From assembly GCA_001179505.1 (NCBI GenBank), contig CDMY01000366.1, forward strand, positions 124,001-188,000: a stretch of 64,000 bases of DNA, in the 5' to 3' direction. The position numbers and the translations under genes are program-made. Position 1 is the first letter of the stretch, and each line of letters starts with the position of its first letter. The notes under the pieces were generated by a model. That model was not told the DNA's origin, did not search any database, and was given only the letters and a program-made list of their open reading frames with translations. Origin of the DNA: Vitrella brassicaformis CCMP3155. Its lineage: Eukaryota; Protista; Chromerida. Below are positions 25,205-35,962 of this stretch, one piece after another.

Positions 25205-25490
25205 TGCAGACCTTCGATCACGTACTCCTTGCCTCTCGAAACGCGCAGCTTGATTCGACTCTGGGCGGCAAATCAGCTGCGTAGATGCCGGAGGAGGAAG
25301 CACCTCTTCGCAGCTTTGTCAAACGCGAGCTCGATTCGAAGCTAAGCTCGCAATGGAGCGGACTCCTTCTTACGGTGGACGCGAGGTGCAGCAACATCTC
25401 ATTTGAGTGATCTTGTTGCCGATCGGACAAGTCCCCGCTGCTTGCTCGCCCATAAGGCCCGTGCCCTCATTCCTTCTTCTGGTTGGCGCC

Positions 25491-28400
25491 ATGAATGAGT
25501 ATTACTACATGTACACGAAGCTCCGCAAGGAGTTCGGGCGGCACTGCTATTTTGAGGACAGCGACCCCAAGATGCTCGGCGTGGTCGATGCACAGCCCGG
25601 CCTCAGAGACGGGTTCGTGCCGCAGAACCCACGACACTTCGTCGCCGACAACATACCACAATTCTCGGGTACGCAGGATTGCATAGCCTGGCCCCGCAGC
25701 TGGGGCATGCACTCATCTGCTTGTCTCTGTCTGCCCGTCTGTCCATCTTTCGTCCGCAGAGCATGCCGTCAACACGGAGCGAGTGAGCGTTGCAAGCAAG
25801 GGCATGAAACACGTCGAGGGGGGCTGGCCGAAGGAGGTGGATGCCACGGAGCACCAGGAGACGTCCAAGTGGCGCAAGCGGCTGGACAAGGACCCCGGAT
25901 TCGCCACGGCCGTCAAGCATTTGTGTGCAGACGCCACCAAGTACCTCGAGCAGAACAACACCATCGACATTTTTGAGGAGTACTTTGAGGGCGAGACGGT
26001 GCAGCACAGCACCGAGAACCTCTCCACCAAGACACTCATGCTCTTCAAGTCAGCCAGCTAGCCACCCTTACACATCTATGCACCTCTTGGATCGTGTCTC
26101 TCGTCCGTCCGTCCGTCCGTCCGCCCGTCCATCTGTCTGTCTGTCTGTCTCTGTGTGTCTCGTTTGTGAAGGGATGAGGTAGAGGGTGTTCGTCGCACAG
26201 CGACCAAGATCTGCTGGCACCCCGAGGGCCCGTCCAAGCTGGCGGCAGCCTACTCGATCATGCGGTTCCAGAAGATCCCCGACCCGATGCCCTCCATGGC
26301 CTTCGTGTGGGACACGTCCAACCCCAACCTGCCGATCGCCGAGCTGGCATCCCCATCGCCCGTCGTGACGCTCCAGTACAACCAGAAGAACACCGATGTC
26401 ATCGTTGGCGGATGCTACAACGGGCTCATCCGTAAGAAAGGAAGAAACAGAAAGACAGACAGCCGGCATCTGTCTGCGCTATTGATGTGCGCGGATTGAC
26501 AGAGTTGTGGGATGTGCGCAAGGGTTCTCAGCCGGTGGAGTCTTCGGCCATCGAGACATCGCATTACGACCCCGTATACGAGATATGCTGGTCGGTCGGT
26601 CACCTCACCTCGATAGGAATGCACATCACATCCATTCCATGCAGCACAGACAGACGCACATGTCACATGCATGCATGTGTCTCCATCCATCCATCCATCC
26701 ATCTTCCCATCCATGTATTGATTTGATTGTCAGGCTGCAGAGCAAGACCAACAGCGAGTGTGTCTCCGTCAGCACCGATGGCAGGTCGGTTTAGTCACTG
26801 AGTTTTCAATATATGTTTCACTCGCTTCCATGCAAATATATGTCGCAATCATGTATGTTTTTCTGATCCATCGTGTCAATGGCCGGCCACCAGAGTGTTG
26901 TGGTGGGATGTCCGCAACATGGCTGAGCCCATCGACACGTGTGAACTCACCGACGCAAACAAGTAAGAAAGGAAGAAAGGAGGAAACAAAGAAAGTCACC
27001 ACACACAGGCAGTAAGCTCCACCATGCACAAACAACAAAGTTCGTTCTCCGGGTGAACTCAGGGATGATCCCAAGTTGCTGGGCGGTGTCTCACTCGAAT
27101 GGGCGCTGGAGGCAGGGGTACGTACGCTTGAGACAGAAACTGGATGGGGCCGTCGTGTGATCGATCCCCGGGTTATCGAAACGTATGTGCCTGCCTTTGT
27201 TCCCTTTTGTTCTTCCAGCCCGGCAAGTTTCTGATAGGCACTGAGCAGGGAGTGGTCCTCTCGCTGAACAAGAAACCCAAGAAGGGTACAAACAATACGA
27301 AAGCGATAGACGCATTTGTGTTCTCGACGTGTCGTGTCGAGTATAACGTTTCTGTGGATATGTGTGTATGGTGGTCAGCTGTTGAGATCCAGACCCGTTT
27401 CGGGATGGAGAGCGGCAGACACTACGGCCCCATCTACGCCGTCAAGGTATCCATCCATTCGCTTCGCGCAGACAGACAGATATCTTCCTTGCCTTGCCTT
27501 GCATGTCTTGATGCCGACCTCTCTGTGTGCGCATGGCATCAATGACAGCGCAACCCGGCGCAGCCCAAGTTCTTCCTCACTGTTGGCGATTGGTGCACAA
27601 AGGTAAGTCAGGTGCCTCAACACACACACGTCCACGTGCACACACACGGGGCACAGAAAGGGTGTGTGTGGGGCGCCAGATATGGAATGAGGACCAGAAG
27701 ACCCCAATCATGTCGACACAATACCACTCCTCCTCACTGATGACCGGTCAGCCAGCCAGCCAGACAGAGAGAGAGAGACAGGATGACTCTTCCAGCCATC
27801 CAACTGCGCCTTGTCATTCCTCTCTGCAGGCCAGTGGAGCCCCACACGTCCCGGGGTCTTCCTGGTAAGGACAGGATTAATGACTTTAACACAGTTCGGC
27901 CTTTGCTGCACATGTGGGTGGGTCTTTTGCTGGCCTGGCCCCTTGCCGGCGTAATCAGGTTGGTCGTCAGGACGGTTATTTGGACTTCTGGGACTTCTTC
28001 TACAGACAAAACGAAATCGCATTCCAACACAAGGTGTGCACACATGCGCGCAGCAACGTGCAATGCTAGCCCCCTGTTGGATGGTATCAGGTTGGTGAGG
28101 CGGCTTTGTGGTCGATTGCCATCCAGAACCAAGGGCAGCTGGTGGCCGTGGGCGACACCGACGGTGCGGTGACGCTGCTGGAGCTGTGCGAGCCCCTCGT
28201 CGTGCCAACATCCGCTGAGAAGACCGTCATACAACAGGCAAGCCGAGAGACATCGAACAATCGTGCGCTTGACTTAACATCTGTCTGTTGTCCGCATGTA
28301 TGTATTTGTGCACATATATATCATACTGCAGATGTTTGACCGTGAGTCGAGAAGGGAGAAGAACCTCGAGACAGCAAAGAAACAGGCCGAGGGTCAGCTA

Positions 28401-28905
28401 CCAGAACACAACTGATCACATCACACCACACACGACAGCATACTCGCAGAAGAAAGAATGATATACACTTTCACACCCCAGGCAAGAAGGCCCAGCGAGA
28501 GGGCAGCCCCTCGCCAAGCGGCCCACCGCCACGCAAAGCTGAGGTCTGTGGTCCCACACACAGCCAGCAAGACAAGCCGCGCGATATCCCCGGCTCGTGT
28601 GTCTCTCTTGTGTGTCTCAGGAGGCAGCTCAGTTTGAAGAAAAGTTCTTCACCGAAGTCGGCATCTCGCCAGCGGCTGGCGGTGGTGCTGGTGCTGCGGC
28701 ACCCGTCATGACGAACGGGGAGCCCTCACACGAGCAGGAGAACGGCGTCCCGGATGCAGCAGAAGCCGTGGTCAACGGGGTGCCAACTGAGAACAGAGTG
28801 CCGGAGGCCGAGAATGGTGTGGCAGAGAATGGGCCGGTGGCGGACGGAGAGCCTGCTGTGGATGGGGAGGGGGAAGGGGAGGCCAGACGGCCCAGCAATA
28901 ACTAA
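25491..28905 (+). CDS. DNAI2: Axonemal outer-arm dynein intermediate chain 2 (IC2/ODA6), WD40
   Basis: MNEYYYMYTKLRKEFGR, HVEGGWPKEVD, QNNTIDIFEEYF, ICWHPEG, VWDTSNPN, GGCYNGL, SHYDPVY, FLIGTEQG and HYGPIY, followed by an acidic tail. Confidence 0.95.
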
Positions 28906-29457
28906 TGATCATTGATCGATGGAACGGGTACGTACATGTGTTCGTGTGTATGCCGGTGTGTTCGTATGTATGCGGTGCGTGCGTGGGTGATGGATTCACT
29001 TCACCCTCCCTGCCCTGCCCTGCCCTGCATGTACGTACGGCGGATCGATCGGCTCGTGTCTGTTTCGTTTCAAGTCACTCACTAATAATCCATAGATATG
29101 TGTCTCACAGTGTGGATCGGATCCCAAGACAGACAGACAAGACCCACCCACTGTCAACACCCCAGCACCGTACCATACGGACATAAAAGATACCGACAAG
29201 GACAGGCGGTCCCGAGTGCAGCGAGGGAGGCATGGCATACACACAGAGACATTTCTATACACACACACACACATGGATGCACGCACAGATCAAGAGATTT
29301 CCACTACCAAACACTTGTGAGTCCAGTCAATGGCAAGGCACACATATACACGAATTAGGTTTAGATACATACATGTATACACACACACATACATGCACAC
29401 GCATGCAGCGCACACCCATAGAAAACCCGAACGTCTCCCTTCCCTCATGCGGCCAAT

Positions 29458-32400
29458 CTATCGACCATTCGTGCCAGTCGTCTTGGTCTCCTCAATTGCC
29501 GACAGCAGCTGCTGCGTCAGGTCCACCTGCTCCTGCGCATTGTTCCTGGAAGCCGTCTCTGTCGACGTCTCGTTGTCTGGAACGAAGAAGTATGTGACGT
29601 TGCCGATGTTGTAGACAAATGTGCCGTTGGTTTCGAAAAGCTGGCCCTCCAGCGCCTCGTACTCGGGCAGCGACACGAGTGCGGCCCGGCCGGCCGTCGT
29701 GTTGACCCCCAACCCCACCGGCGGCAGGGGCGAGCCCGTGTAGGCCTCGGGCACATAGGGCGCCTCGTCGGGCGGCAGAAAGGCCAATGTCATGTTCTCA
29801 TCGTAGGCCGGCGGCAGACGCGACACGGGGGGCGGTGGGGGGAGGGTGTGAGTGGCGTTGTTGTCCTGCAGCTGTCTGTAGCCGTATGTGTGAGGGTTGT
29901 AAGCGCCATACGCTGCGGAGTAATCGAAGTAGGCCGCTCCACCTGAACAAGAGAGACAGGCAGACAGGAAGACACGGTGCACTGGGGCAATCCATCCATC
30001 CATCCATCCATTTGTGTGTTTGCGTAGGTGGGTACAGTACATGTGTATGCGCCGTCAATGCAGACGCCCGAGCAGCAGTCGGAGTTGTAGTAGCAGTAGG
30101 TGCCGCCAGTGACGCACGCGTTGGCGTAGTAGTCTCGGAGATGGTAATACGGATAATGATAGTAGGCCAGGTAGGGATACCTACACACACATAATGTACC
30201 CCATACATACCAACAGCACAACCCACCTTCAACACACACACCGACGCAGGCGAGACAGACAGACACCACACTCCCGACCCGACCCGACTCACCACCAGCC
30301 GCCCACAGAGACGCTGACGGACCAGCCAACAGCCACCCGCACAGGTACAGCGACAGGGTACCGGAACGCAGATCCGTAGACGAACTTCGGGTAGCCTACA
30401 AATGGCGGGCGGACCACGGGAGCAATATATGGCGTGCGGTACAGTGGAGGCACGAAGGGTGCCCTCCTCGGGAAGTAGCGGACGGCGGGGCGGGCGTTCC
30501 ACAGCGGGTCTCGGCCGATCCCGATGTTGATGCTGATGCCCACCTGGATGGGACGTTCCCGCTGACGTAAGGCCTCGTCAGCTGCACACGTGCACACACC
30601 ACACCACACCACACCACGCCACACAAGTGCACACAGACATGTCTTATATGATTCGCCTTGTCGTCTTGTCCGTACGGAATATGTCGTCCTTCCATCCACC
30701 CGGAGGCCCTCCAGGCCTTCGCAGTCCGCCGCCTCTTGGGAGGCTGATCCCAATGTCTCGCACTGTGTCTAGCGGCCACTTGTTGTCGTTGTCCGGCAGC
30801 CATCGAGGGCGGTCGAATGGCCGCCCGTCGTCATCGTCGCCGATCAGCCAGCCGGGGAGGCCACCCCCCGGTCTGTCACCGTCATTGTCCTCGTCTCCCA
30901 CTCCAGGCAGAACGTCGGGAAGGTCATCGCTGGTGCACGGAGAGAGATCTTGTCTTCGTGTGTGGCGGCTGTCTTCACCTTGTCCTCCTCTTACCCAGGT
31001 CTTTCGTCGCCATCCTGGTCTCCGGGAAGCCGAGGAACTATCGGCTCCTGGTCATCGTCAGGCCTGGTCGCGACACACGTCTATGTGGGCATGTCCGAAC
31101 GGCGTCCGTCACTCAATCGTGAACTCACCGTGGGATAATTGGTGTGTCGTCGTCGCCAGGCTGTTGAGGATTTATCGGCTGCAGACCTTCGTCATCTTCA
31201 TCGTCCCCTGCTCCAGGGAGAATGCCGGGATTCTCGTCGCTGCGGACACAGAGCATCATCCGAGCAGCCTGTGGCCGCCCGACCTTGCCATTTGCTTACC
31301 CTGGTTGTTCGTCAACATCGTCATCGTCCCGAGGTGTGATGTCAGGTCGAGGCAGGATCGGTCGGCGGTCCTCGTCTTCATCGTCACCAGGCGTGAGAGC
31401 AGGGCTGTCGCTGGAGGGCACAACATGCACACTTGGGGACCACCAGCAAAGAAGTGCAAAGCACTCACCCGGGATTCTCATTGGGGTCGTCATCGCCCGG
31501 TGTCAGTCCCGGAAAGGGAAAAATCGGCCGACGATTCCTCTCGTCGCCGTCTTCATCGCCTGGGCCATCGACAGGCGGGCCATTTCCCCCGGGCGGGAGC
31601 CTGCACACAGCAGCAAGGACACACCATTGCGTGTGCTCGCTACTGCGCGGTGTCTAGCAAGATCACCTGGGTCTGTCGCTGGCGTCGTCATCGCCAGGAG
31701 TGACGACTGGCTGGTCTGGGAGGATCTGACGATCGTCGTCGCTCGGACTGCTGCTGCATCGACGGCGAGTGGAGACAGCAGTGGCGCTAACGCACGTGCA
31801 TCTATCGTCCCTTACGGTGGCGCGCCGGGCAAGATGGGCTGCTGACTGTCATCGCCAACCGGGCGAGAGATCGGGCTACTACGTTCATACGAACGTTCAC
31901 ACACCACACCCACACAGATGCTCATGTGTCTTTGTCTTGGCACGTTCCTGCTGTGTGTTTGTGTGGGCAGGGCACCTGGGGGGGCTCCTTGGAAATCCCG
32001 GAATGCCAATTACGCGAGGGGGGTCATCCCGTGGGGGTGCGACAGGGCTGATGGGTCGGTCAGGGAGGGTGGGGCTGCATAGCGTAGCATAGCAATGGCG
32101 CCAAGTCAAACAGCGTGTGTTCCAATTCAAGGGCACTCCCTCCCACAGTCACCCAGCAGCAAACCATCTAGCTCAGCTCACCGGTCATCGCCCTCATCAC
32201 CTCCACCGAATCCAGGGAACCTCGGCCTCCCGCTGCCGCCGCCTGAAAAGCATCGGGGACAAAGCAACCCATATACACCTGATATATATACATCTGCACC
32301 GGCTGGCAATGACCTGGAAAAGTTGGCCGTCTTCCTCCGTTGCCAGGTCTGGGAAAACCCCCATCCCTGCCACCGAACTGGCCCACAGCGGCTGCAGACG

Positions 32401-32527
32401 CACAAACAAACCAGACACACAGACAAGCAGATAAAAGCGCTGCAGGACAAGAAGGGGCTGCTTTGTTACCCAACAGGAGATTGGCCGCCACGACAACGAC
32501 AACGAGATGATGTCTCAGGCGCCTCAT
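29458..32527 (-). CDS. Secreted modular protein A: acidic Asp/Pro/Gly repeats, Tyr-rich segment, knottin-like 6-Cys motif, shared C-terminal domain
   Basis: Signal MRRLRHHLVVVVVAANLLLA. About 13 exons that splice in frame. Repeats include TPGDDDASDRP and PGDDEDEDRRP, followed by YPYLAYYHYPYYHLRDYY, CVTGGTYCYYNSDCCSGVCIDGAYTC and LAFLPPDEAPYVPEAYTGSP... Confidence 0.75.
29566..29844 (-). repeat. 279-bp inverted duplicate of 35138-35416
   Basis: Manual alignment with the reverse complement shows about 7 mismatches and no gaps. Confidence 0.92.
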
Positions 32528-32879
32528 TTTTCGCGTGTCAGCCTGGCTGCGAGCGGACACACAACGGCTGGCCGGCTGGCGTTGGTCGAAGCGCCAAAGT
32601 GAGGTTCAGATTTTTATCGGCGCTCTGTTTCAAGTTGCCCCCTCATTCTGGGAATCTCAGACGAAAGGAAGGGAAACACACCGTAGGTGCCCAAGCACGT
32701 TGTCCCGTTGTACCACAATTTCTAACGGAACCGAAATTGTGGTACAACGTCCTTCTTTTCTCGTCTTCCTTTTCTTCTTTCCTCCTTTCCTTTCCTTTCC
32801 CCTCCACGTACAAGCAGACACAGAGGGCATCCAACCCCGACCACAGAGATTGTAATTATAATTGTACACTAGAGCCGCG

Positions 32880-35800
32880 ATGAGGCACCTACTCAAACTC
32901 GTCCTCTTCGTAATCACTTGTGTCTTCATCGGTGAGAGTGACAACCTCTCACTGTCTCATCCCCGTGTTTGGCATTGTCAGGTTGCGTCTCCGGAGATCC
33001 TGGTGGTGGCGGTGGCAGCAGAGGTGGCGGGAATGGGGGCGGCTCTCGCGGCGGCGGTCGTGGTAGTGGCAGCAGAGGTGGCGGGAATCGGGGCGGCTCT
33101 CGCGGCGGCGGTCGTGCTAGTGGCAGCAGAGGTGGCGGCTCTCGCGGCGGCGGTCGTGCCGGTGGATCCAGGGGGGGTGGATCTAGAGCAAGGGCATCAA
33201 GCTCCAGAGGGGGCGGCTCCAGAGGAAGGTAAACAAGCAACGAGCCACGTACTTGACTGGACGCCAGCCGTCAGCTGATGCTCGCCTTCAGGTCTGGCGG
33301 TTCGCGTGGAGGTGGGTCAAGGTCAGGCACTTTCGGGGGCGGCAGAAGAGGCAGGACCGCTGTGGGAAGGTAAGACCACACACACGCTCACTGGCTGGCT
33401 CGTCACAGTGGACACCGACAACGTCTCTCTCTTTCTGGTTGTCACCCAATTCTAGTCTCAGCCGCAGTAGGGGGTTCTCTGGTTTCAGCAGGGCAGGATT
33501 CGGTGGGCGACCTGGACGGGGCTCAGGGATGCGCAGCGGCACTGCGTTCGGGAGAGCTGCAGCCAGCAGATCTGCCTTTAGAGGGTAAGCAACAAAGAGA
33601 CCTACACCCACTGGCAGATGCGTGTCACTGTGGCTTCCTTTCACTAGCAGCAGCATGGGTGCCATTCGCAGCAGGGCAGCGGCAACTTCTGCTGGTGGTT
33701 CAAGAGCGGGCGGCAGGCGAGGCTCCATCGGCGGCAACAGGTGAGAGAGAGGCAGACACACGCCACGAACAAACTGCTGGTTTCTACGTCTGTATACGGG
33801 TGCTTTTGACGCGTCTCATCAAGGCGACCTAGCTTGGCTAGCATCGTGGCCAGCGCCGCTCGGGCTTCGTCTGCATCAAGGGCGCCACCCGGTCGGTCGT
33901 CGTTGAGCACCCTCAGCAGCAGCCGTGCCGGAGGGAGCCGCACCTCTCCCTCTGCCAGAGCAGGCGGGGCGCGAGGCGCACGAATGGGGGTCATCGGCTC
34001 CTTAGCGAGAGCTATCGGGTCCCCCCGCACGCCAAGGTGATACGATCGGTACACGCACACAGCCACACGCGAGTCTAATCTCACACCTCCCTGGCATGTC
34101 GTCTTTTCTTCAGAGGCGCCCCTGGGCTATCCGCTCATCCGGACCGTCCTCATTCCCTCCCGGCTGGTGGCAACAGACGGGACATCCCCACTTCGCTGAA
34201 TCGGGGCGGCGGCTCCAGAAAGCGTGGTGGCTCACCCAAAGGCATCAAAGACAGCGTCCTCTCATCAAGCGTCCGCGAGCGGCCGACGCGCCTGGGCCCC
34301 AGGAAGAACATCGGCATCCCGCGAGATCCCCTGGCCAACCGGCGTAGAGAGGTCCGTCACTTCCCTCGACGGCCGCCTGTCATCCCAGACAAGTTCAGGA
34401 CACCAGTCAAGGGCCGCAGACCAGAGAGGCCAGACGCCCCAGCCGCGCCCGTCTTCAACGGCCCGCCCCAGTTCATCAGTGGCCCTGCGATTCGGCAGCC
34501 TGTGCCGACGCCAGTGCGTGCACCGCCCGTCGGAGGGGATGTCGATCCTGAGAAGGATGGGTCGTTTTTGAATGGCGATGACGACGATTCGCGGCGCACA
34601 GGCATCGGCAGAGGGCCGCGGAACGGCTTGGGGTTTTTCGGATTTTTCGGAGGCCGCTATGGCCGCTATGGCTATGGCGGCGGATGGTGGTAAGCGGGAA
34701 AATATAAGGGAAGACCGACCATGGGACTTGATGTCCATGTGCGTGTGTGCAGGTATCCGTATATGCCCTACTACTGGTCAGGGAAGAGGGGAAAACCACG
34801 GCTCGTGCGGCGCGTTGTGGACGTCATTGAGTGTTTTGAATGCAGGTACCCTCGTTACCGGCTGGGCGGCTACCATCACAACCAGTGCGTCGCGGGCGGC
34901 ATGTCGTGCCACTACAACTCAGACTGCTGCTCGAATGTATGCGCCGAAGAGACATTTACGTGTAAGCACACAGCCACGCTGAAAGCCAACACATCTTCGC
35001 GCCAATTCGTGTGTGTCTTGTGTGCCTCGTGTGGCTGCACTCCAACAGGTGGCGCTGCATTTCTGGACTATAACGGGACCGATGCCTACTTTGATGAGCA
35101 TGACCCATCCGCATACAGGAGACTCCAGGCGAGCAAGCTCCCCCCACCGCCCCCCGTGTCGCGTCTGCCGCCGGCCTTCGATGAGAACACGACATTGGCC
35201 TTTCTGCCGCCCGACGAGGCGCCCTATGTGCCCGAGGCCTACACGGGCTCGCCCCTGCCGCCGGTGGGGTTAGGGGTCAACACGACAGCCGGCCGGGCCG
35301 CACTCGTGTCGCTGCCCGAGTACGAGGCGCTGGAGGGCCAGCTGTTCGAAACCAATGGCACATTTGTCTACAAAATCGGCAACGTCACATACTTCTTCGT
35401 TCCAGACAACGAGACGGATACCACACCGACATTCGCTGTCGAGCATGAGAAGCGCCGCCGGCTCGATGGCCGCAATGCCGATGACGACGACCAGGCCGAC
35501 ACGTCATGCGACATATCTGTCGGCGGCTGCCATCCTGCCTCCCCTCCGCCCTCATTCCTCTCTCGGACAGCCAAGCCCCGCCTGCAGGTGGAGGTCATTC
35601 CAGTAGAGGGCCGCATGTGGGCAGGCTGGTCGATCGTGACAAAGACCGGCAGCCGCAGTCCGTCCACCGACCACATCGAGCACTTCCGTCTCTACTGCGG
35701 CCCTGAACGAGACGTCAAGCGGAGCAAGCGCAACCTGATGGCGGTGGTACCCAACAGGCAGACGGGCAGGGCGAGGCGGGCGGGGGGGCGTCCCGGATGG

Positions 35801-35962
35801 TGGGAGACGGACATCCACGTGGACAAGGACGTGCATGCGGACATCAAGTACTGTGTGGTGACACCGGTGCGGCGGGGCAGGGGAGGGCGGCTCAAGGCTC
35901 TGCCGCAGTCAGCGACGAAGAAGGCGGTATGGGACCATACGCCCCTCTACTCGCCGAACTGA
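32880..35962 (+). CDS. Secreted modular protein B (paralogue of A): basic Gly/Ser/Arg repeats, Tyr-rich segment, knottin-like motif, shared domain and an extra C-terminal beta-rich domain
   Basis: Signal MRHLLKLVLFVITCVFIG, then GSRGGG repeats, GIPRDPLANRRREVRHFPRRPP, GGWWYPYMPYYWYPRY, CVAGGMSCHYNSDCCSNVCAEETFTC and LAFLPPDEAPYVPEAYTGSP... Stop at 35960-35962. Confidence 0.75.
33010..33230 (+). repeat. Coding tandem repeat (unit about 54 bp) encoding GSRGGG/RGG repeats
   Basis: tggcagcagaggtggcgggaat(g/c)ggggcggctctcgcggcggcggtcgtg occurs twice, followed by degenerate copies. Confidence 0.85.
35138..35416 (+). repeat. 279-bp inverted duplicate of 29566-29844
   Basis: About 97% identical by manual count to the reverse complement of 29566-29844. 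Confidence 0.92.

Follow-up and report, generated by a model that had tools for sequence, protein, structure and literature searches.

The cement of the sandcastle worm is a complex-coacervate bioadhesive made of oppositely charged secreted proteins, the Pc proteins, in which the anionic charge comes from phosphoserine. Plant class II glycine-rich cell-wall proteins consist of a signal peptide, a Gly-rich region and a C-terminal Cys-rich domain. Among chromerids, Vitrella possesses a multi-laminated wall that is absent in Chromera (PMC6379472), while only the polysaccharides of Chromera have been analysed so far with regard to chromerid walls (PMC9293442). Presented here are two genes, A and B, which lie back-to-back in the coral-associated alga Vitrella brassicaformis CCMP3155 and are both expressed. 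Positions (Table 1) refer to the window, i.e., the whole analysed stretch of 64,000 nt. A literature search on accession numbers found no paper, and one for Vitrella life-stage data yielded the wall description only.

Table 1. Features of the A/B locus in window coordinates.
Feature	Position	Strand	Description
Gene A	29458-32527	minus	ATG 32527, stop 29458; 14 exons, 678 aa
Gene A exons 1-7	32527-32470, 32391-32314, 32242-32182, 32074-31976, 31878-31816, 31753-31667, 31600-31469	minus
Gene A exons 8-14	31410-31300, 31239-31129, 31063-30995, 30929-30676, 30581-30293, 30180-30041, 29942-29458	minus
A exon 1	32470-32527	minus	signal-peptide exon, MRRLRHH and Val/Leu core, ends in phase 1, splice verified
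A exons 4-11	30676-32074	minus	Pro/Asp/Gly-rich acidic arm, repeated PGDDD and RPI.P motifs
A exon 12	30293-30581	minus	conserved RDPL..FPRR Pro/Arg/Val motif region, ends at GGW/W
A exon 13	30041-30180	minus	Tyr-rich block and six-Cys unit; sixth Cys codon split by next intron
A copy of conversion tract	29566-29844	minus	aa 551-643
Divergent spacer	32528-32879		352 bp, presumed shared promoter region
Perfect palindrome, mid-spacer	32706-32749		17-nt arms, 10-nt loop
Gene B	32880-35962	plus	ATG 32880, stop 35962; 10 exons, 813 aa (our model)
Gene B exons 1-5	32880-32931, 32982-33228, 33292-33369, 33456-33584, 33648-33740	plus	our model
Gene B exons 6-10	33824-34036, 34114-34689, 34753-34776, 34846-34961, 35049-35962	plus	our model
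B exons 2-6	32982-34036	plus	Gly/Ser/Arg-rich basic arm, frame model-dependent; exons 3-6 symmetric, phase 2
B exon 7	34114-34689	plus	RGGGSRKRGG, RDPL..FPRR motif, Gly/Phe/Tyr run, ends at GGW/W
B exon 9	34846-34961	plus	Tyr-rich stretch and knottin-spaced six-Cys unit
B copy of conversion tract	35138-35416	plus
B-specific C-terminal extension	35417-35959	plus	181 aa, 4 Cys

The divergent pair and its shared core

Judged by an identity of 54% over A329-645 / B281-634 (BLASTP, E = 1e-116), A and B are true paralogues. The coordinates, the divergent layout and the spacer given by the sequence-only reading of this DNA are right, and the arrangement is tentatively best explained as an old inverted duplication whose copies would be transcribed outward from one 352-bp spacer. 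The palindrome in the middle of the spacer occurs once in the window, is matched by 0/100 shuffles (DNA fold z -5.9) and was not found upstream of a third paralogue, C, where it was also looked for.

Common to A and B are a signal-peptide exon and an extended low-complexity arm, the RDPL/FPRR motif (RDPLxNxRxxVRxFPRRxP), the Tyr/Trp block GGWWYPY, the six-Cys unit and, C-terminally, the motif NGT..Y...NVTY..VPD. The RDPL/FPRR, GGWWYPY and six-Cys elements had been recognized before and are indeed found in both, as are two conserved intron positions, at GGW/W (phase 2) and at the last knottin Cys (phase 1); the signal-peptide intron is likewise in phase 1 in A and B, provided that our model of B is right. 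Each protein has six NxS/T sequons, and two are invariant across all three paralogues. Tyr residues make up 25% of A467-518 (13 Tyr in 51 aa) and 14% of the B counterpart. The cysteines are spaced C-x6-C-x5-CC-x3-C-x6-C in A and B, and identically in C except for x4 in the last loop, with the CC in the middle and loop lengths compatible with ICK (inhibitor cystine knot, knottin) peptides. Concerning Pfam, UPF0506 matches the unit of A with 8e-5 (23.4 bits, cutoff 23.2) and that of B with 1.7e-4 (22.3 bits, just below the same cutoff), while the conotoxin/omega-toxin families gave below-cutoff matches (omega-toxin 1e-3 for B); a PDB sequence search matched the unit of A with the spider ICK peptide 5fzv at a borderline E of 0.006. 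Pfam searches with seven exon-level pieces led to no matches beyond the six-Cys unit, and an ESM Atlas look-alike search with the core gave nothing usable. AlphaFold, run on a three-sequence alignment of the Tyr/knottin/C-terminal region, reached a pLDDT of 32 (~53 at best in the knottin region) and gives no fold-based support.

Gene A is verified throughout, as 13/13 introns appear as joints in the transcript contig L002 (4647 nt) and the runs X8, X1 and X2. Additionally, ORF P0009 of MMETSP, a public marine-protist transcriptome set, bears out the exon 12-14 junctions, and the public assembly likewise annotates this span with a product of 678 aa. An apparent 19-nt insertion in exon 12 of L002 is an N10 scaffold gap. 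The exon 1 leader reaches a maximum Kyte-Doolittle value of 2.95 (11-residue window), and exons 4-10 start and end in phase 2 throughout and are thus symmetric. The arm of A (aa 20-396) has a net charge of -45 and a pI of 4.05, its core (aa 100-330) a net charge of -49 with 23% Asp and 20% Pro; the strongly acidic arm described earlier is therefore confirmed within a fully transcript-verified model.

Spliced mRNAs of both genes (for B, of the 3′ half) occur in two of the three RNA-type culture data sets, X8 and X1, and X2 contains A without an unambiguous B contig. All three consist of contigs and hence hold neither expression levels nor life stages. As to the co-expression previously suggested, both mRNAs are present in the same cultures, but with X2 showing only A unambiguously, tight co-expression is no more than possible. 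Secretion, also part of the earlier reading, is likely for both proteins because they have N-terminal hydrophobic leaders and are otherwise free of membrane spans, their six-Cys unit is of the disulfide type and their N-glycosylation sequons are conserved.

The C-terminal domain had been regarded as near-identical in the two proteins. Near-identity there is, but it belongs to a tract of 279 nt with sharp borders (A 29844-29566, B 35138-35416), where the two copies differ at 7 positions (97.5% identity) and dS is 0.06 while the flanks are saturated. By this pattern the tract is a gene conversion between A and B. Its copies are collapsed by assemblers, giving a joint between opposite strands, and short-read assemblies falsely join A and B through it. 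The extension that follows in B has no Pfam match and no sequence relative. The leads from an ESM look-alike search, of fn3/Ig type, were weak (score 0.88 or below), AlphaFold modeled the last exon alone with a pLDDT of 41, and VIA-align on this low-confidence model found generic Ig/FN3 sandwiches (Z 5-6.5); as a weak lead, the extension is possibly an Ig/FN3-like beta-sandwich. A PDB sequence search with the last exon of B gave chance matches to ricin only (E ~1).

A three-member family and its possible role

The third paralogue, C (CEM13232.1), is unlinked to A and B and combines the same core with a basic arm and with a solute-binding domain (PF00497, SBP_bac_3). Its arm (net +95) is more basic than that modeled for B, and transcript L001 proves part of it to be in frame with the core. 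With C in the family, the A/B pair is not exclusive. Such a set agrees equally well with a reusable module for anchoring or targeting and with a two-component material, and the solute-binding domain of C suggests that the part common to all three may serve as a general anchor and not as a material component.

Relatives outside Vitrella were found neither among 1.84 billion representatives nor in word-based searches. Specifically, an exhaustive HMMER search with the last exon of B and word-based searches, including the Tyr block, led to no apicomplexan match within a limited length window and sensitivity, and the same searches found no family member in Chromera. A 2241-aa protein, P0003, was rejected as a relative, as it looks like a bacterial repeat protein whose 14 weak repeat matches are apparently compositional. 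By these searches, A, B and C form a family of three that is confined to Vitrella, and their modular proteins are predicted to be exported.

We propose, with some reserve, that the three proteins are building blocks of an extracellular wall or matrix. In each member a signal-peptide exon is followed by a long charged low-complexity arm encoded by small symmetric exons, and then by the Pro/Arg motif, the Trp/Tyr block, the knottin-like six-Cys unit and a short motif in which two N-glycosylation sites are conserved. The aromatic and Cys module would act in binding or cross-linking, and the arms would supply charge, that of A being Asp-rich and polyanionic and those of B and C Arg/Gly-rich and polycationic; A could thereby associate electrostatically with B and/or C. 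A Vitrella-only wall family fits the laminated wall found in Vitrella and not in Chromera, which is a correlation only. Should A and B (and C) indeed belong to the wall, no protein constituent of a chromerid wall would have been named before them, and they would be a genetically compact model of charge-paired extracellular material in an apicomplexan relative.

The same architecture could also mean that the shared core is a reusable module for surface or wall anchoring or targeting of unrelated cargo, with the arms as spacers and A and B not being partners. The cargo does differ per member (the PF00497 domain in C, the putative beta-sandwich extension of 181 aa in B and the acidic arm only in A), and a family of two basic members and one acidic, with C unlinked, agrees with such a module. 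However, A and B lie head to head across one short spacer with a palindrome at its centre, which suggests that they are controlled jointly, and arms of opposite sign, several hundred residues long and with a net charge of ~50 or more, would be extreme for mere spacers; we consider the spacer reading rather unlikely.

Reading frame of the gene B arm

A two-component polyelectrolyte (complex-coacervate) material, as suggested earlier, would call for two secreted proteins of large opposite net charge; the -45 of A is verified and the +57 of B (pI 12) holds in our model only, the public frame giving -17. From exon 6/7 on, B is verified by RNA contigs (joints 34034>34112 and 34961>35049; X8 contig 34112-34633), and a loose contig end at 34845 supports the 69-nt intron 34777-34845. 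The public Augustus model CEM06377.1 (758 aa) differs from ours in exons 1-6: it uses junctions 32909^32982 and 33740^33944 in place of 32931^32982 and 33740^33824, and reads exons 2-5 in an Ala/Val/Glu frame. No readable spliced contig (X8, X1, X2 and the JGI contigs) covers exons 1-6, and there is no transcript for the 5′ half because exact-pattern scans of the JGI contigs for exon 1 and the end of exon 5 gave no match. The X8 bin depths over 32700-33300 are explained equally well by an unspliced contig and by one from which precisely 50 nt (intron 1 of our model) have been spliced out.

Were the public frame right, the B arm would not be basic, charge complementarity would vanish and the pair would be two diverged duplicates. 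Augustus models of this kind did in general use RNA-seq intron hints (PMC4501334), the two disputed junctions are not crossed by a spliced contig, and a general codon log-odds score sides with the public Ala/Val frame for exon 2. The same score, however, fails on the verified arm of C, and a synonymous-codon test slightly prefers our frame; when the arms of A and C, whose frames are verified, served as controls, the true frame was not singled out by codon log-odds, by GC3 or by the synonymous-codon test. Against the public model, it requires a 203-nt intron, whereas every other A/B intron measures 50-112 nt, and it interrupts the core of the signal peptide in phase 0 after only 10 codons, whereas in A (verified) and C this exon runs for 18-19 codons and ends in phase 1. 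Moreover, the same public annotation is at odds with transcript L001 in C, GGGS(G)R-type motifs recur in the verified exons 2-3 of A and in the frame-certain exon 7 of B, and Ala would be written as GCC in 1/51 codons compared with 39% in verified genes. We therefore regard the public frame as improbable. By analogy with the family members A and C, the Gly/Ser/Arg frame is quite probably the right one, and the strongly basic, GSRGGG-rich arm proposed earlier for B remains the likelier reading, but its charge of +57 is tied to our model. The public models of B and C apparently misread the Arg/Gly-rich arms, and proteomic or comparative studies using them would miss these regions.

Proposed wall building and known systems

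Within the building-block reading, acidic A and basic B and C might be deposited in turn, as in polyelectrolyte films built layer by layer, with Tyr/Cys cross-links and the aromatic knottin module locking them in place, giving rise to the up to a dozen wall layers that set Vitrella apart from Chromera. We hold this to be a long shot; if true, this lineage would have invented the family for a wall that is laminated and chemically impermeable. That A and B are instead precursors cleaved to small Tyr-rich knottin peptides with antimicrobial or signalling roles, the charged arms being pro-regions, is very improbable, since the weak match of the six-Cys unit to venom-type ICK families and the KR sites after the shared motif in B are set against the lack of dibasic sites flanking the unit in A, its position between conserved non-toxin motifs in 3/3 paralogues and the length of the arms, whose several hundred residues far exceed what is usual for pro-regions.

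With ICK peptides (spider and cone-snail toxins, UPF0506) the family has in common the spacing C-x6-C-x5-CC-x3-C-x(4-6)-C, with borderline HMM and PDB matches; the Vitrella unit, however, is an unusually Tyr-rich internal module of 700-1000-aa proteins rather than a free peptide bordered by cleavage sites. Concerning coccidia, the sequence-only reading had seen in A and B a possible forerunner of oocyst-wall chemistry, an idea to which homology gives no support, and as no relative was found in Apicomplexa or Chromera, the likeness to the Tyr-rich precursors is analogy only. Like Eimeria GAM56/GAM82 and Toxoplasma TyRPs, to which we found no sequence homology, A and B are (predicted) secreted proteins with local Tyr-rich blocks in an alveolate that makes a resistant wall, but their Tyr residues adjoin a knottin-like unit and long charged arms.

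Plant class II glycine-rich proteins resemble B and C in the order of their parts, a signal peptide followed by a long Gly-rich and then an aromatic/Cys-rich region, and homology is not expected; the Vitrella arms differ in being Arg-rich and strongly charged, and that of A is Asp/Pro-rich. Finally, the sandcastle-worm Pc proteins are like A and B (predicted to be secreted, B as modeled) in that one organism secretes one polyanionic and one polycationic protein containing Gly and Tyr. A and B differ from them in that the anionic charge of A comes from Asp/Glu and not from phosphoserine, and in being paralogues that share a folded module.

A divergent gene pair, its transcripts and a third paralogue

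Introns are frequent in the window, a stretch of eukaryotic DNA from Vitrella brassicaformis CCMP3155 with 55-62% GC, and both models of the head-to-head paralogues A and B were built from six-frame translations. Their start codons lie 352 bp apart, as the sequence-only reading had measured, and the flanking genes, of which one encodes WD40 repeats and is convergent and the other encodes a coiled coil, are unrelated to them. The common layout that it had proposed is real: the motifs are present in both proteins. BLASTP aligns them with E = 1e-116 (54% identity, A329-645 and B281-634). Two intron positions are likewise conserved in place and phase, one after GGW (phase 2) and one within the codon of the last knottin Cys (phase 1).

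Features of A, B and C (window positions unless marked L003, the DNA contig carrying C)
Feature	Position	Strand	Description
Gene A	ATG 32527 to stop 29458	minus	14 exons, 678 aa
Gene B	ATG 32880 to stop 35962	plus	10 exons, 813 aa (our model)
Leader, A and B			hydrophobic, in short first exon
Arm, A and B			long low-complexity region after leader
A arm	aa 20-396		net charge -45, pI 4.05; 19% Pro, 18% Asp, 16% Gly
B arm (our model)	aa 23-339		net charge +57, pI 12; 29% Gly, 19% Ser, 18% Arg
Pro/Arg motif, A and B			RDPLxNxRxxVRxFPRRxP
Trp/Tyr block, A and B			GGWWYPY
Six-Cys unit, A and B			C-x6-C-x5-CC-x3-C-x6-C
C-terminal stretch, A and B			ends NGT..Y...NVTY..VPD
B private C-terminal extension	35417-35959		181 aa, four Cys
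Near-identical tract	A 29844-29566, B 35138-35416		279 nt, 7 differences
Spacer palindrome	32706-32749		perfect; 17-nt arms, 10-nt loop
Palindrome with CT-rich tract	32706-32798		tract about 50 nt, directly after palindrome
Rebuilt C	L003 8434-12613		about 1028 aa: signal peptide, 360-aa Arg/Gly/Ser arm (net +95), core, family-3 solute-binding domain

Public runs containing this DNA were aligned over 29900-35899. Joints at the A introns occur in three RNA-type contig sets (X8, X1 and X2), with CT..AC ends equivalent to GT..AG on the minus strand, and a single X8 contig of 1751 nt already carries most of A in spliced form. All 14 exons are found exactly as modelled in an independent JGI transcript contig of 4647 nt (L002), which starts 6 nt upstream of the ATG; a 19-nt "insertion" in it was dismissed as an N10 scaffold gap. 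The last three junctions are confirmed by ORF P0009 of MMETSP, a public marine-protist transcriptome set, and in the public assembly this span is annotated with a product of 678 aa. Because these sources agree, the model of gene A is settled. For B, joints were observed at 34034>34112 and 34961>35049, a 69-nt intron (34777-34845) is supported by a loose contig end, and exon 7 and the last exon are also covered by X8 and X1 contigs. Both genes are expressed in the same cultures (X8, X1), while in X2 A alone is unambiguous. Over 28616-29458 and 25359-28905, L002 continues without a break from A into the convergent WD40-repeat gene. With about 550 nt between the two stops, the 3' UTRs either meet or overlap, or else the two were joined by an unstranded assembly. 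Two A introns contain microsatellites (ATCC x5.5 at 29990-30011, CACAC x6 at 30595-30624), at which contigs are reported cut when reads are aligned.

When the last exon of B was searched exhaustively with HMMER against 1.84 billion representatives, four matches were returned. Two are the pair's own products (B, and a fragment of A); a third is a bacterial repeat protein, whose match looks compositional and was set aside. The fourth, P0004, belongs to the cluster of CEM13232.1 (C), which is a Vitrella protein with the annotation solute-binding family 3. Located on a different contig, C presents an FPRR-type motif, GWWYPY, six Cys and the NGT/NVT motif, followed by PF00497; it matches A by BLASTP (6e-13) and shares the GGW|W intron with both genes. 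In C, no intron interrupts the codon of the last knottin Cys. A transcript contig (L001) proves part of a GSRGKG-type basic arm to be in frame with the C core, contradicting the public C model just upstream, where an annotated intron ends at about L003:9436. When C was rebuilt from its signal-peptide exon via the Arg/Gly frames, the transcript-verified frame was reached. Word-based searches, family profile included, found no relatives outside Vitrella. The gene pair is real, expressed and lineage-specific.

Charged arms and the reading frame of B

The A arm is as strongly acidic as had been claimed. Its exons are small and symmetric, each with phase 2 at both ends, and the motifs PGDDD and RPI.P recur in it. 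Such exons make up the low-complexity arms of both genes (30676-32074 and 33292-34036), and their symmetry would permit exon duplication or skipping without frame shift. Tyr is confined to the C-terminal halves; in A, the 51 aa surrounding the knottin unit include 13 Tyr. Each protein bears six NxS/T sequons in its C-terminal region, two of them invariant across all three paralogues, and neither has a second hydrophobic span besides the leader.

The strongly basic B arm of the same reading stands in our model and fails in the public frame, where exons 2-5 encode an Ala/Val/Glu-rich stretch of net charge -17. The public Augustus model (CEM06377.1 / A0A0G4F3H3, 758 aa) has identical exon 2-5 boundaries, read one base off; its first-intron donor is at 32910 and its fifth intron spans 203 nt, against 32932 and 83 nt in ours. 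No readable spliced contig covers either disputed junction, and exact-pattern scans of JGI contigs for a B 5' transcript gave no match. By a general codon log-odds score the public frame comes out ahead; the same score cannot separate true from shifted frames in the verified arm of C. A synonymous-codon test leans toward the basic frame, with noisy controls. Exon structure favours the basic frame indirectly: the verified exon 1 of A has 19 codons and a phase 1 end, directly behind the hydrophobic core, and the probable first exon of C ends likewise after 18, as does B exon 1 in our model after 17. In the public model the hydrophobic core is interrupted in phase 0, only 10 codons from the start. 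All other A and B introns measure 50-112 nt, which argues against the 203-nt one. Further support comes from GGGS(G)R-type motifs in the verified exons 2-3 of A and the frame-certain exon 7 of B, and from the transcript-backed basic arm and rebuilt model of C. The basic frame is quite likely the correct one, and a striking charge inversion between A and B is probable. The public models of B and C both appear to shift Arg/Gly-rich exons into an Ala/Val/Glu frame (32880-34036; L003 8434-9489), regaining frame in B through an unusually long intron and in C through a mini-exon.

Gene conversion and the intergenic spacer

Only one tract of A and B is nearly identical at the DNA level. Codon analysis gave a dS of 0.06 inside it, against saturated synonymous sites in the flanking homologous regions (dS 1.2 to unmeasurable), which indicates an old duplication and a recent gene conversion between inverted copies. 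The near-identity ascribed to the C-terminal domain therefore holds for this tract and ends with it, and is not evidence for exceptional constraint. The tract also makes assemblers fuse A and B ("opposite strands" joint). The spacer palindrome is unique in the window, beyond chance, and absent upstream of C; we regard it as a candidate element for bidirectional control.

Possible roles and likeness to known modules

With their leaders, disulfide-type module and conserved sequons, A and B are very probably secretory-pathway proteins. No mention of the accessions of these proteins was found in the literature. Our best guess is a structural wall or matrix role, because the arms extend over several hundred residues of extreme composition, aromatic and Cys modules are present and the family is Vitrella-only. 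Vitrella has a multi-laminated wall and Chromera lacks one (PMC6379472), a distribution matching that of the family, which we count toward this role; the Chromera wall is largely cellulosic, and what has been analysed of chromerid walls so far is its polysaccharides (PMC9293442). A serious rival is that the core (FPRR-type motif, Trp/Tyr block, six-Cys unit and N-glycosylation motif) serves as an anchor module, as the C core also carries a ligand-binding domain. The earlier proposal that the oppositely charged arms would form a coacervate is compatible with the data; the suggested role as a forerunner of oocyst-wall chemistry is supported by no homology.

Structure predictions were unusable because of too few relatives. 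The B extension has beta-strand predictions resembling an Ig/FN3 sandwich, a weak lead, and none of the collections searched contains a sequence relative of it. Pfam recognises the six-Cys unit alone: UPF0506 reaches its cutoff in A and narrowly misses it in B, and conotoxin and omega-toxin families give weak matches. Among PDB sequences the unit is matched best by an inhibitor cystine knot (ICK) peptide of a spider (E 0.006). By its spacing the unit is knottin-like, a putative member of that class.
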